Numbered from the whole stretch's first letter, positions 21,432 through 27,771 are shown. The stretch: DNA of 63,739 bases, filler included, from Perkinsus chesapeaki ATCC PRA-425 (GCA_013115145.1; 10 parts of 10 records of this genome joined end to end with filler, not necessarily neighbours in it), one strand, 5' to 3'. Notes: generated by a model from the sequence alone, not told the origin. A program made the numbers and translations.

Positions 21432-22337
21432 GCTTAACTGATCCTATAAATGGTCAGTGTGAGGAAAAAGGACAATAACTATTGGAAAAGAGTAAACGGG
21501 ACGCATCTCGTATTTCATTTATTCAGGAATTTTAAGAGGCTTTTTTCAAGTCGATCAGAACTGATTCAGTAACATCTTGCCGCTGCAACGATAAGCGTCG
21601 GCTGCTCTTCACAAACTGTGCATGAAGATTCCAAAGGAGGTTGATTAGTTAAGCTTGCTAATGTTGCTCATTTTCCCATGGCCAGCGAATTTTTATATCG
21701 AATATTGTATTAAAAATTATGACTGTTGATTAATGAAAAGTCAATCTCAATCGTCCCAGCGTCTTTGGATACATAAAAGGCACTGGCAGATATCGATATA
21801 TTGAAAAACACCAAGTCGACTCCACAGTAGCTTCTCTTTAGTATTTTCGGCGTCCCGCATCGGTCCACAGTGTTTTTCTCGTCTTTAACGAAGACAGCCT
21901 CCTCCGATTGAGACGACTACGATGTGTTTTTGCGACCTGGAAAGAATTTAAATGCAAAACCTACTATTGTCCTTGCGATCAGATTGCTTTACAAATCAGA
22001 ACGGTTCTCAAGCGATTATCAACGAGTAAACTACTCCGATCATGAGACATTTTGTCAGGACTACGAATAAGACCCGACCCAAAGATGTACTGCTAAACCC
22101 AAGAACAACCAAGATATAGACACNNNNNNNNNNNNNNNNNNNNNNNNNNNNNNNNNNNNNNNNNNNNTTAATTAATTAANNNNNNNNNNNNNNNNNNNNN
22201 NNNNNNNNNNNNNNNNNNNNNNNGTAATATCAATTCCATATGATCCCCCATATGCTGTAGGCTATATCACCAGACTACTCATATGTTGCTCGTGTTTCCG
22301 TTTTTCGTCTCTCGTTTTCTCTAATTCTCACTCCAGG

Positions 22338-24145
22338 TGACGATCATGAGTTTGATTCTGATTCTGATCACGAGCCCGAGGACGATGATTTTGATATGCA
22401 ATGGAGAATTGTTCCTTCTACACGCCGGTCCAAGAAAACGGGAAAATTCGGCAAACTTCTCATCATTGATGGCTATAAGTACTGGAGGCGACCAACTGCC
22501 AACACTGAAAAGGTACTGGGCATTAATGGTGCCGCAACCCCGCTTATGAAGCTTGTTCGAATGATCCAATCAAGCATTGCTTGATGCCCGCCAACATCTG
22601 CAGTTTCTTTGTTCAGGTCAGATATATTTGCTCCACTGCAGGATGCAATTCCACTGCATATACCCTCATCATTGAGAAACCGGACTCCAATGATGTATTA
22701 GATGATGTGGAAGAAATGCTCGATCTTAGCTCGGTAAAGGTCCATGATCATGCTCCACCCGACATGTAATAACTCTCTGCTTGTACAATACGCATTATGT
22801 TAGTGCGTTCATTCACATAGTATATCTTTATCGTAGATCCAAGGGCTGGAATCGCATTGTTGCTCATCGCGTCCGTGAGATAACCAAGGAGACACCATTC
22901 CGCTGTGCGTCCTCTATTTATGATGAAGCAGTCAAGATAGTTCCAAAGGAGTCTCGCCATCTCGTGGGAAGTTTGACCCGGTTCGGTCCTCTCATATATC
23001 GGCAACGTTCTGAACATCTCCCTCCTAACCCGAAATCTGCCAAAGATGTTACTCTCCCTGATGATCTCACAGATGCTGTCGGAGAGTCCTTTGTTCTTGC
23101 CAACCAAATGGTATCTGGCGAGAGATTTGTTATCCTAGGATCACCTAGCGGTCTGGCACAGCTCATAGAGGCTTGTACTTGGGTCGTTGATGGGACTTTC
23201 AAGGCAGCAGGCGGCATTTTCCATCAATTGTTGGTCTTTCATAAGCCTGCCACACCGGTTAACACTCCTTTGGTCTTCGCCTTCCTCGAGGGCCGTTCTA
23301 CTGCCACATATTCGACTCTACTCTACCTGTTGCAGAATTGCTGTCTGAAGATACACAGGAAGAAACCGTGTGTGCAAACTATCATATCTGATTTCGAAGG
23401 TGGTATTGTGAAGGCTTTCCCTTCAACTCTGGGGCAAGTGCACCACCACCTTTGCCTTTTTCACTTCTCCCAGAATATCATTCGGCGTGTAGACAAGCTT
23501 GGCCTCGGGAGACTACATCGGGCAAATGCACACGGATTCCGTTCTCTATGTGATATGATCAGAGGTTTGCCTTTCGTCCCACTTGACCATCTGCAGCCCG
23601 CTTGGGATTCCATTAATGAATTCTTCTCTAAGAATATGGATAGCATCAGCGCTGCGGATAAACAAACGGTTGCCAAATTTTTGAAATATATTGAAAATAC
23701 TTACATCTCTGGTAATCAGATCTCACATGGTCAACCTCTTTTCCCCCCGCCGCAATGGAACGCTGCGGATATTGCTGGTGGCGGAGACGCGGGTCACCGA
23801 ACGTCGAATGTGGCCGAGTCGTTTAACAGGAAATTAAATCGAAGATTAGCTAGCCATAATCAAAGTTTTTTTTTCACAGTCTTCGTGTTGCTGGAGGTAC
23901 ATGATAAAGCTCAAGTGCAACTGAAGAGGGCTACTCTAGGAGATAAGCAAAGGGAACAAAGCAAGAGAAGACGTGATTGCGAGGTTGACCTGCAGAATTT
24001 ATACAAGAATTATTTTTCTCACGGCCTTAATCGTCTCTCCTCCCCGCAGTATCAGAGATATACAATGCTTTGTGCGAGCTGTATAGCACGTGCAAGAACT
24101 GCTGATAACACCGCATCGCGTGTGTCCAAGCGACAGAAAAAATAA
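22338..24145 (+). mobile_element. Mutator-like (MULE) DDE transposase with N-terminal FLYWCH-type zinc finger, spliced (at least 2 introns); first exon not resolved
   Basis: LIIDGYKYWRR..K/VRYICSTAGC..VHDH, then an uninterrupted core with VDGTF (D1), PLVFAFL, ISDFE (D2), CLFH and NVAESFN (E). GT-AG introns after 22512 and near 22766 restore the frame. Confidence 0.9.
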
Positions 24146-24418
24146 CTATTCTTCTTGTATCGCTAAAGACTAATTAAGTAGCTGCTCTGTCTTGTAACGA
24201 AACTGTCGTTTTATGTTGACCGTGCTTCTGTGTTTCTGACAAACTACAAAGTATTTGGGTTATGTAGTATAAGTTTGCGAACAATGCCACCTACTTCTGC
24301 ATCGCAATTCTACCATTAGTGAGCACGATCATCGTTGATCACCACAGACATGGTAGAACGGGACTCCCGTACGGGAGCGCTCGATGTCAAATTCTTCAGC
24401 TCGCTATTCGCAGATTAC

Positions 24419-24494
24419 GAGGCCCTACCTGGATTCGAACTCGCGGTCTCCGGATTAAAGGTACCGCGCTCTGCCAGTTGGACAGAAAAGACTC
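24419..24494 (-). pseudogene. Degenerate tRNA-like sequence (Gln-like 3' half)
   Basis: Minus strand reads GAGTCTTTTCTGTCCAACTGGCAGAGCGCGGTACCTTTAATCCGGAGACCGCGAGTTCGAATCCAGGTAGGGCCTC. A-box-like TGTCCAACTGG and B-box GTTCGAATCC are present; stems are imperfect. Confidence 0.45.
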
Positions 24495-24499
24495 AGCGT

Positions 24500-24750
24500 A
24501 AGTGTACGAACACTTGTGTGTACGACTTTGAGATGAACGAAATCAAACTGAACCGAATTTTAGTGTACGACATAAAAGTGAACGAGATTTTTGTGTACTG
24601 CTTGGCCCTGAACCAATTTTTGGTGTATCACATTTTGTCGACAGAGATTTGAGCGTACGGGAATTTGGTGTACCAGTTAAAAATCAAAAATTCGGTGTAC
24701 GAGTTTCATGTGTACCTAATTTATGTGTACCAATCGTTATACACCCACGA
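24500..24750. repeat. Degenerate ~15-bp periodic array (core GTGTAC/GTGAAC), probable MULE subterminal/TIR array
   Basis: Core recurs near 24502, 24517, 24533, 24549, 24563, 24579, 24593, 24609, 24623, 24653, 24668, 24695, 24710 and 24725, downstream of the transposase. Confidence 0.7.
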
Positions 24751-24904
24751 AATCTAGGAGGATTCCTTCTGTTATTTCATCTTGGTTAGCTGGGAATGAT
24801 ATTTGGGAAACTTAGCAGTGACTGGAGTGGACTATTTAGCGTTGGTGGTCCTCGGGACCCATAAGTTATTAGTCTCTTCAGTTGTTGTGATTTCAAGTAT
24901 CACC

Positions 24905-26737
24905 ATGAGTTTTCCAACTACTTTCTTCGTTGGTAACATCCCCACTTCGGTTGATGTTGTTCCGGCCCCTGACCTTGTACATGGTCCTCGTAGATGGTTG
25001 GCTACTACCAGGCCACATTGGTCTTACTTCATCTCCTCAAGCTACCAGACGGATCCTGAGAAATTCCATCTATATCAGGATCTTGTTGTCCCTCAAGCTA
25101 GGGGTTACGTTCGTGGTACTGTTTATTGCAATGTGGCGGTGATGTATCGTTCTGGTTTGGAAAAGGGCTTGTGGGACTGGCTTAACAAACAGCCTATCCC
25201 ACGCAAGGAACGTAAGGAAAAGGAGGCCTTTGTTCGTGCTGTTATCGATGACGCTATCTGGCCTGTTATTGATATCTGTGGTAGCACTCCTGGCCCCTGT
25301 CCTTACGAGCATGACATCGCCCACATGGGCCAGAAGTTTTGGAGTATGTTGGAGTCTGATGGGAACGAGGTGCCTTCAAACTTCGTAAATTATGATGATT
25401 CCAATTATCGTATTCCTTACTCTGATCCAGGATTGATATATGATCCATTAAGTGGTTTTCCTGTTGAAGAAGCCTTCCCCTTGGGGGAAATGGCTGATTT
25501 AGATAGTGAAGAGTCTCTGAATCGTTTATATTTTATGGGGGCCCAGTTATTATGGGGTCGCTCAGCGTTTGAACATGTTCCTCGTAACATTTCTTTTTTA
25601 TTTCCGCCGCACTCTGCATTTAGGCCATCTACTTTGGCTTTTGATTTTACGTTATTACAACGTTCTTATCGTTTCTATTGTTCTGAGTGGCCATCTCTAA
25701 ATTACTATGATGTGTTAAATTTTACTCTTGACACTCATTTGGATTTATCCTCTTTAGATGTGCTTCTAGAGAACTTTCTGAAACGCTGGGTTCCTGTAGA
25801 TCGTGCCTTGCAGGGTGCTTTTATTTTCGCAGCTGATCTTAACCTCGGCTGCTTTAGCCATGGGCTAAACCTAGGCCGTAGGTATAGGAAGTCTGGGAGC
25901 GCTACAGAGTCAGCCATACATTTCTGTGGTGACCAATGGTCATACCTTTTTTCCGATGTAATGTTCAGTGACTTGTACATTGCTGTCGGTTGTGGTGAGA
26001 AAGGTAAATTCTACTCGGCTCTCAATGATACCTACGTGCTTATGGCTTCATTGCTGCCTCGTTCTATGGGCTTGTCTCCTTCAATGAGTTACCTTTTGCA
26101 TAAGGCAAGTTTTGGCACTGCTACTGATACTGATTATGAGATTATTGGTGACTTCTTCGAATTCCTATTTGGGATTCTGGTTCTTCAAGGAAGTGGTGAT
26201 ATCATCAGTCTTATGGTGTCTGCCTTGGTTCTCATTCAAGGTGTCAAGAATAGCACCAAGGAGCTTCAGCTTGCCGTGTTGCCCGATTTCTCTGTTGACA
26301 TCGAAGATCTACGAGTTCCTGCTCAAAGACTTGGTTTATCTCCGCCTACTTCCTCTTTGAAGAACTATGTGTTGGGTCTCCGCAGCAGTGCTAAGCCCCA
26401 AGGATGGAAACGTCTTTCCGCCTTAGGCTCTAAATCGTATTCATCCTTCTATTCCTTCGACTGGAGAACATGCGGCCACCCAGATCATCGAGTCTATTCT
26501 TTATTCCGCCGAATGAAGAATTTTAGAGGATATATTCTATATTTTGACGGTTCGACCGTTAAAGATCGGCCCACAGAAGGCCGTCATAGAAGACGGATTA
26601 GGGAATCTGATTTCCGTAAAGTTATAGACTCATCTTTGGCTAAGTTTGTCCACAGCAAGGAGTGCAGGCAGCTGATGAAGAGATTTTTCCCTACATTTGC
26701 TAGTAATGTTGATATTTCTGATACTATTCAACCTTAG
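24905..26737 (+). CDS. Intronless ~610-aa protein with two tandem divergent RNase III-like motifs (candidate minimal Dicer-like)
   Basis: Long ORF, first ATG at 24905. NRLYFMGAQLL (~25520) and SAIHFCGDQWS (~25910) resemble ERLEFLGDAVL. EIIGDFFEFLFGILVLQG (~26140) matches the ADxxEAxxGAxxxDxG motif about 73 aa after the second GD. Confidence 0.6.
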   Translation: MSFPTTFFVGNIPTSVDVVPAPDLVHGPRRWLATTRPHWSYFISSSYQTDPEKFHLYQDLVVPQARGYVRGTVYCNVAVMYRSGLEKGLWDWLNKQPIPRKERKEKEAFVRAVIDDAIWPVIDICGSTPGPCPYEHDIAHMGQKFWSMLESDGNEVPSNFVNYDDSNYRIPYSDPGLIYDPLSGFPVEEAFPLGEMADLDSEESLNRLYFMGAQLLWGRSAFEHVPRNISFLFPPHSAFRPSTLAFDFTLLQRSYRFYCSEWPSLNYYDVLNFTLDTHLDLSSLDVLLENFLKRWVPVDRALQGAFIFAADLNLGCFSHGLNLGRRYRKSGSATESAIHFCGDQWSYLFSDVMFSDLYIAVGCGEKGKFYSALNDTYVLMASLLPRSMGLSPSMSYLLHKASFGTATDTDYEIIGDFFEFLFGILVLQGSGDIISLMVSALVLIQGVKNSTKELQLAVLPDFSVDIEDLRVPAQRLGLSPPTSSLKNYVLGLRSSAKPQGWKRLSALGSKSYSSFYSFDWRTCGHPDHRVYSLFRRMKNFRGYILYFDGSTVKDRPTEGRHRRRIRESDFRKVIDSSLAKFVHSKECRQLMKRFFPTFASNVDISDTIQP

Positions 26738-27771
26738 TTAAAACCCTGAGGGGGAGTTGTCTGTTCTCGTTTGACTGACTCCAGTCTACACTGGGGGGGT
26801 ATGTTATAGTTTAGAGAGTTACGTTGTACGGGAATTGAATCGGTGGTCGTAGATAGGTGTAAAGGCGTATGGTGTGATGGTGTAGAGGGGGATCCTANNN
26901 NNNNNNNNNNNNNNNNNNNNNNNNNNNNNNNNNNNNNNNNNTTAATTAATTAANNNNNNNNNNNNNNNNNNNNNNNNNNNNNNNNNNNNNNNNNNNNGGA
27001 GCATCCTGGCCCTGCGATACCTTATCGGAGCGTTCTAGCAGAACTTACTCCTGATCCAGGTATCGCCTCTCCCCAAGCTCCCGGAGAGGAAAGCGGTTTT
27101 ACGGGTAGGCCTCTACTTTTTCCTACCCTAGATCGACTCTAGAGGGAAACTTACATTCTACAGTAGTTTCGGTATCGACTTCACGCTACGACCCGACCAT
27201 GGCGGTGCCTGACCCGACTCCTGGAAAGGAACTAGACCCTCCAGGGTAGAGAAGCTACTGTGACATGGCTTCGATGGTATTGTTTGTACATGAACTTGAT
27301 CCGGGATGATCTGACAACGCTGAGGACCCCTCACTGAAGAGCTTCACCGGTAGCTGCCCCGGTAGCGATTACTATCGTGTATTTAAGGGTGCAACATATT
27401 GCTAACTCATCACCATTGCTAATTTAGCGGCTAAACTCTAATATAAACAATCGAATCTGTCTCGTGCTAAAACAGAAGCGCACGATGTGTACTAAAGTTG
27501 CTATGATGATGAGTGTGATAGATTTCACTCGCGCAACGGACTGCTGTCAAAACCCTGCTGTACAACATGTTGAATGGGTGATATGGTTCGTTTCATTGGC
27601 ATTGACGAAAACTCGGAACAGCATACTAATTACATAATAACGGAAACCGTATTGTAACGGAAACATAGAGGGAAAATATGAGATGATAGCGAGGGAAAAA
27701 GTCGAAGCTTCCAGTGCCTATCCGGCAAACAAAGCTGTCTTCCATTCACTTCTTAATCAACTCCGGAGCAA

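Follow-up and report, generated by a model that had tools for sequence, protein, structure and literature searches.

The described RNase III-type proteins closest to the one considered here are the homodimeric class 1 enzymes (bacterial Rnc; Aquifex, 1jfz and 1yyk) and Mini-III (4oun), the Entamoeba histolytica EhRNaseIII (PDB 5f3o; PMC4521922, PMC5357909), which is recognizable as an RNase III by sequence, and the helicase-less Dicer-like proteins of Giardia and trypanosomes, in which two RNase III domains form an intramolecular dimer, accompanied in Giardia by a PAZ/platform ruler. Here, we explored an open reading frame (ORF) of Perkinsus chesapeaki ATCC PRA-425 that occupies positions 24905-26737 of a 63,739-nucleotide stretch of DNA in which 10 parts of the assembly GCA_013115145.1 are joined with filler (hereafter, the window). 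The initial annotation read this ORF as a candidate minimal Dicer with tandem, divergent RNase III domains. Our analysis points to a different architecture, namely, an intronless, Perkinsus-specific protein family in which residues 282-453 form one extremely divergent RNase III-type domain with a His-Asp-Asp-Glu (H-D-D-E) site, a reading to which we assign a probability of roughly 0.55. The features of the ORF on which the argument draws are the following.

24905-26737, plus strand: ORF encoding the FOL47_001102 product, uninterrupted, 610 codons and a stop, member of a Perkinsus-restricted family
25262-25315, plus strand: C-x4-6-C-P-[YF]-x-H motif of the N-terminal region, conserved, as is a further Cys upstream of it at residue 75
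25514-25558, plus strand: helix starting SLNRL, formerly taken as the first RNase III signature; LNRL is conserved in three paralogues, and no RNase III structural match includes the helix
25584-25757, plus strand: intron called in GenBank, 174 nt, in-frame GT..AG, conserved as coding sequence in the paralogues
25748-26263, plus strand: predicted RNase III-like endonuclease-fold domain of seven helices (residues 282-453)
25919-25933, plus strand: H339-x3-D343 (IHFCGD) at the start of predicted helix 3, aligning to E41-x3-D45 of E. coli RNase III
26150-26161, plus strand: D416-x2-E419 (GDFFE) in predicted helix 6, aligning to D114-x2-E117 of E. coli RNase III
26351-26680, plus strand: conserved C-terminal region, residues 483-592 (W.R.SALG, GHPD, RP..EGR)

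The principal evidence for the domain comes from structure prediction. AlphaFold2 was run twice on the six-sequence alignment of the family, once for the full-length protein and once for residues 196-455. The full-length model is poor, with a predicted local distance difference test score (pLDDT) of 40; the model of residues 196-455 is usable (pLDDT 61, predicted template modelling score 0.64, core helices 70-88) and contains an all-helical fold of about 150 residues of the endonuclease-domain type. Among the top 26 rows of structure matches, all alignments longer than 100 residues are to RNase III-type domains, except for 9hlz_99 and 9ya0_DA, which we could not assign, and the remaining rows are helical hairpins of 40-56 residues. 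The matches also include DCL1, Dicer-1, Dicer-2, and the mitoribosomal protein mL44 (6ywe_5, 3j6b_5). The same domain, at residues 282-453, appears in the separately computed full-length model (9dei_B, 7.5; 5f3o_A, 7.3), to which residues 5-147 of the Aquifex enzyme align at 16-17% identity (1jfz_A, 16%); chains B and D of 9dei we take to be RNase III-type subunits of the RNA-editing catalytic complex of Trypanosoma brucei. Judged from these models, residues 282-453 are likely a true homologue of the RNase III fold.

Within the predicted domain, the second motif pair singled out in the initial annotation falls in register with the catalytic residues of the bacterial enzymes. At a relaxed threshold, hhalign places both halves of the pair in one colinear alignment, with IHFCGD on LEFLGD (H339 on E41, D343 on D45) and GDFFE on ADTVE (D416 on D114, E419 on E117). 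The codons of H339 and D343 lie at 25919 and 25931, and those of D416 and E419, in IIGDFFEFLFG, at 26150 and 26159; indeed, every motif string quoted for this ORF is present where it had been placed. Like their counterparts in bacterial RNase III, H339 and D343 are found near the beginning of the third helix of the modelled domain, and D416 and E419 in the sixth. Three of the four RNase III carboxylates are thus present (D343, D416, and E419) and, in the register of the relaxed alignment, His replaces the first Glu, in agreement with the original description of this center. H-x3-D is kept in 4 of the 4 copies that cover the site (the window copy, P0002, P0003, and the copy at locus L003), as is D-x2-E (4 of 4: the window copy, P0002, P0003, and P0005), among sequences that are otherwise 27-36% identical overall. 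At such divergence, an invariant H-D-D-E speaks for a metal or substrate site that is functional and against one in decay. In mutagenesis of the E. coli enzyme, E41 reportedly proved the least critical of the four carboxylates.

The ORF is a real gene of a conserved, small, intronless family that is restricted to Perkinsus and evolves under purifying selection. When 1.84 billion representative proteins were scanned exhaustively with HMMER (E<=0.001), six proteins emerged: P0001, which is the GenBank product of the ORF itself, and five relatives, each of them from a Perkinsus record or from the run SRR12548988. The P. chesapeaki paralogue P0002 (614 residues) aligns end to end at 29% identity (E 3.8e-49); the other relatives include the partial sequence P0004, fragments of 357 and 122 residues from SRR12548988, and a 113-residue relic from P. 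olseni. The full-length paralogues of the ORF product stand at 27-29% identity. P0002 and the SRR12548988 copy at locus L002 share 62% amino-acid identity, and because the proportion of nonsynonymous differences between them (pN) is 0.23 against a saturated synonymous proportion (pS) of 0.80 over 591 codons (pN/pS 0.29), the family evidently evolves as protein. The end-to-end alignment with P0002 likewise marks the ORF as more than a chance reading frame. Two small sequencing runs of the same species yielded no reads for the locus, and no RNA run was recorded as containing it, neither of which is evidence that the gene is silent. No further relatives were found in the viral and metagenome contigs scanned with family patterns, and a word search matched only the query protein itself, or P0002 and P0003. 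The L002 copy (1049-2958) contains a frameshift near 1729-1741 that splits it into two overlapping ORFs, either an assembly error or the mark of a pseudogene. The P. olseni relic (L004, 8150-8371) covers about 76 residues of the D..E helix region at 44% identity to the window protein; it is annotated as a 113-residue hypothetical protein and lies amid the host genes PCIF1_WW and MmgE/PrpD.

The intronless character of the gene, also noted initially, holds in spite of the GenBank model. FOL47_001102 is the sole database protein identical to the ORF product, and its GenBank model, of 552 residues, removes the stop-free, in-frame GT..AG segment 25584-25757. Because this segment holds residues conserved in the paralogues (PHS.F.P, YR, and SLD, the last of which starts the RNase III-like domain), it is probably coding and the intron call wrong. 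For the paralogue FOL47_004171, GenBank calls an "intron" of 48 nt (L001, 9420-9467) that is likewise in frame and free of stops, and whose translation is conserved in another copy. The introns of both models are probably false, to judge from these alignments. GC content at third codon positions was uninformative when the ORFs were compared with neighboring genes.

Against an RNase III assignment stands the near silence of sequence-level and global structure searches. For none of the six family members did Pfam return a match at E<=10, RNase III (PF00636 / PF14622) included, and searches of NCBIfam, PHROGs, and PDB sequences with the protein and with family profiles returned nothing relevant and no RNase III match. 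A profile of 8 sequences, E. coli rnc and seven homologues from diverse bacteria, recovers Drosha, plant and animal Dicers, Giardia Dicer, yeast Rnt1 and Dcr1, and mitoribosomal mL44 from the PDB; yet the profile that easily finds Giardia Dicer, and even mL44, reaches no significance for the Perkinsus family (hhalign P 0.09-0.13; about -1 bit in HMMER with all filters off). The ERLEFLGD signature is lacking: the window copy reads AIHFCGDQ and the paralogues LHNISD, IHNIAD, and VHVLAD, so that only H/E-x3-D is shared and the G of FLGD is not retained in the paralogues. Furthermore, Foldseek matched nothing in the PDB or in BFVD at E<=0.001, a search by shape of the ESM Atlas found nothing (template modelling score 0.29 or less), the models were built on only six sequences, a very shallow alignment, and helix 3, which bears H339 and D343, has a pLDDT of only about 50-55. 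The Foldseek list for the PDB, when re-examined, contained short helical hairpins only, and the whole-protein features of the ESM Atlas gave no usable match. The best local hhalign or HMMER alignment always covers the same 23-31 residues, EIIGDFFEFLFG, on the D114..E117 helix, which taken alone is at chance level. Protein-language-model neighbors of residues 280-460 include three Ribonuclease_3 clusters (0.79-0.81), a weak signal that serves as a lead only. A match of the C-terminal tail to AriA (E 0.036, 67 residues) was dismissed as chance.

These negatives give some room to two rival interpretations. The protein could be an all-helical, lineage-specific orphan unrelated to RNase III, in which case the likeness of the AlphaFold2 model and of the motifs would be a coincidence, or a bias introduced by a short look-alike of the D..E helix; the failed searches and the chance-level local alignment are what such an orphan would produce, and the long structural alignments, with both motif pairs in register and invariant across the paralogues, are what it would have to explain away, so that we regard it as unlikely. 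Rather unlikely, too, is the proposal that the RNase III fold is real and the site catalytically inert, the protein being a scaffold for dsRNA (double-stranded RNA) binding or protein pairing, like the degenerate RNase III-type partners in the trypanosome editosome or mL44. The editosome complex includes non-catalytic RNase III-like subunits, and the top structural matches include mL44 (6ywe_5, 3j6b_5) and chains of the RNA-editing catalytic complex of T. brucei; moreover, all copies have His in the place of the first catalytic Glu, and the accessory acidic residues E38, E65, and E100 of the E. coli enzyme are without a conserved counterpart in the relaxed alignment. However, strict conservation of three of the four carboxylates and of a His capable of binding metal, at 27-36% identity, is unexpected for a dead site.

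The tandem arrangement proposed initially, that of a Dicer without a helicase whose single chain bears two RNase III domains, the first dead and the second possibly active, forming an intramolecular pseudo-dimer as in the Dicers of Giardia and trypanosomes, we consider very improbable. Both motif strings do exist, SLNRLYFMGAQLLWG at 25514-25558 and LDVLLENFL at 25751-25783, and LNRL and LD..L[DE].F are conserved in the paralogues. However, single-domain RNase III structures align from residues 282-285, that is, from the LDVLLENFL helix, which is therefore helix 1 of the one domain at residues 282-453 and not the partner motif of a dead domain; the LNRL helix (residues 202-217) has a pLDDT below 50, lies outside the matches, and is separated from residue 282 by only three helices. 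The acidic pair of the supposed first domain has i,i+4 spacing, and in one paralogue Tyr takes the place of the second acidic residue. N-terminal of residue 253, the full-length model gave no match to an RNase III fold, only generic helical hairpins, and structure matches revealed no second RNase III-like domain in residues 1-281 or 454-610. Whole-Dicer chains (7yym, 7ele, and 7v6c) do align over 160-167 residues, back to model residues 1-18 and at lower Z than the single domains, so that the packing of the helices before residue 282 may resemble that of part of a partner domain; this is at most a hint of a few packing helices. Of the two RNase III domains in one chain that mark a Dicer, unless it is a yeast-type homodimer with dsRNA-binding domains, only one was found, and neither Pfam nor NCBIfam gave a match of any kind to PAZ/platform or helicase domains. 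The description of the ORF as helicase-less stands, its product lacking a helicase or any other Pfam domain, and the proposed comparison with RNase III and Dicer folds succeeded in part, delivering one RNase III-type bundle, at residues 282-453, without Foldseek significance and without a second domain. With a single domain, the protein is not a tandem Dicer of the Giardia or trypanosome type and, like a class 1, Mini-III, or Entamoeba-type enzyme, would have to pair with a second subunit. Nor is it necessary for explaining dicing in the genus, given that Dicer-like proteins detectable by BLAST have been reported in Perkinsus marinus (PMC6027434).

If residues 282-453 are the divergent RNase III-type domain that we favor, the protein is most likely a dimeric dsRNA-binding protein and possibly a nuclease. 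Dimerization is proposed because forming a processing center takes more than one RNase III domain; a homodimer, or a heterodimer with a paralogue, would clamp dsRNA and, should the His variant still hold metal, would cut both strands. The conserved N-terminal 280 residues, with their Cys/His motif, and the C-terminal 155 residues would supply substrate choice or partners. Taken as a whole, this sequence of dimerization, dsRNA binding, and catalysis remains tentative. The N-terminal 280 residues are helical in the poor full-length model, and C-x4-6-CP[YF]xH with Cys 75 may form a zinc site. In the C-terminal region, W.R.SALG, GHPD, and RP..EGR are colinear with LQEYLQ, GPAH, and G.G.SKK of bacterial double-stranded RNA-binding domains (dsRBDs), at a non-significant hhalign P of 0.1, and Pfam detected no dsrm domain in the ORF product; that this region is a decayed dsRBD is possibly true, as an idea suggested by motif order.

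Set against the known systems, the Perkinsus protein resembles class 1 RNase III and Mini-III in that the whole endonuclease domain aligns, the motif pairs are in register, and a homodimer is expected. It differs from them in lacking significant sequence similarity, in having IHFCGD (HN[IV][SA]D in paralogues) in place of ERLEFLGD, and in its much larger size; by contrast with class 1 enzymes, a dsRBD is not demonstrable. Unlike EhRNaseIII, the Perkinsus family is not recognizable by sequence, carries His for the first catalytic Glu, and has conserved extensions of about 280 residues at the N-terminus and about 155 at the C-terminus. With the Dicer-like proteins of Giardia and trypanosomes it shares the status of a helicase-less, RNase III-type protein of a protist, and Dicer RNase IIIb domains match it structurally (2eb1, 3c4t, 7yym), whereas it has one domain instead of two and no PAZ. 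No sequence relation was detected between the Perkinsus protein and the T. brucei RNA-editing catalytic complex, and Perkinsus is not known to have an editing complex of this type.

The ORF shares its contig, a complete P. chesapeaki contig of 4,674 bp (22224-26897), with a second long ORF on the same strand, which bears out the transposon neighbor reported in the initial annotation.

22781-24145, plus strand: ORF of a Mutator-like (MULE) transposase, 454 residues (PF10551, E 2.3e-9), ending 760 nt upstream of the ATG at 24905

The linkage to a MULE is a real observation: such a transposase lies within 0.8-1.2 kb and on the same strand at 3 of 3 intact loci. The PHD-MULE gene at L003 lies upstream of P0004, with 843 nt between the two; at L001, a PHD-MULE ORF of 1,187 residues lies downstream of P0002, beginning after 1,163 nt. 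Identity is 24-28% among the three transposases and 27-29% among the three RNase III-like proteins, a matching divergence as expected from co-inheritance of the gene pair. The arrangement recalls MuDR, with its mudrA transposase and mudrB, in that a MULE and a second, lineage-specific ORF are same-strand neighbors in each of three diverged copies. However, neither terminal inverted repeats, sought at the contig ends and near the L001 pair, nor target-site duplications turned up (two of the contigs are too short to include element ends), the gene order is inverted at L001, and mudrB is not RNase III-like. Several further observations weigh, along with that inversion, against the protein being transposon cargo: no DNA similarity links the loci, the 1-1.9 kb flanking the L002 copy contain no MULE, and the P. 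olseni relic sits among ordinary host genes. That the RNase III-like gene and the MULE form a co-inherited pair, as a two-gene Mutator-type element or a domesticated derivative of one, with the protein acting on the dsRNA of the element, appears to us a long shot. If true, the protein would, in the manner of viral class 1 RNase III silencing suppressors, blunt the silencing of the transposon by small RNAs or, alternatively, would feed the small-RNA silencing pathway, and a DNA transposon lineage would possess an RNase III of its own.

Several observations concern the transposases and the intergenic DNA. The MULE transposases beside the paralogues (L001, 11056-14619; L003, 411-3079) bear an N-terminal PHD finger (PF00628), and the one at L001 is a single uninterrupted ORF of 1,187 codons, for which the GenBank model ends at 727 residues. 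Upstream of the window MULE, in 22224-22780, a pair of short ORFs that differ in frame (22396-22584 and 22581-22769) could represent earlier transposase exons cut by the contig end; one short ORF there resembles by eye a GY.Y...W zinc-finger DNA-binding module, for which Pfam gave no match. Between the MULE and the RNase III-like ORFs, eight exact GTGTAC hexamers, all on the plus strand, are packed into 230 bp (24502-24730), 175 nt upstream of the ATG, within imperfect direct repeats of 26-30 nt. The hexamer occurs nowhere else in the window, and 0 of 100 shuffles reach eight; no comparable cluster was found upstream of the paralogues. The cluster could be a regulatory array or the subterminal repeats of a transposon. 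Around 24395-24480, on the minus strand, a box-B-like GTTCGAATCC and a D-arm-like segment resemble a decayed tRNA or tRNA-derived element; a tRNA near 24400-24480 was rejected, ARAGORN and Rfam being negative, and Rfam returned nothing over the whole piece.

The immediate outcome of this analysis is the correction of two GenBank gene models (FOL47_001102 and FOL47_004171), with no new minimal Dicer architecture. The pairing with MULEs raises the idea of a transposon-linked dsRNA nuclease. If the predicted fold holds, the results have wider implications: an RNase III-type family would exist beyond the reach of Pfam, HMMER, and profile-profile detection, confined to a genus of mollusc parasites, and the replacement of four carboxylates by His-Asp-Asp-Glu would extend both the sequence space and the active-site chemistry of RNase III. 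In that case, the family would also be a candidate player in RNA processing or silencing in Perkinsus.
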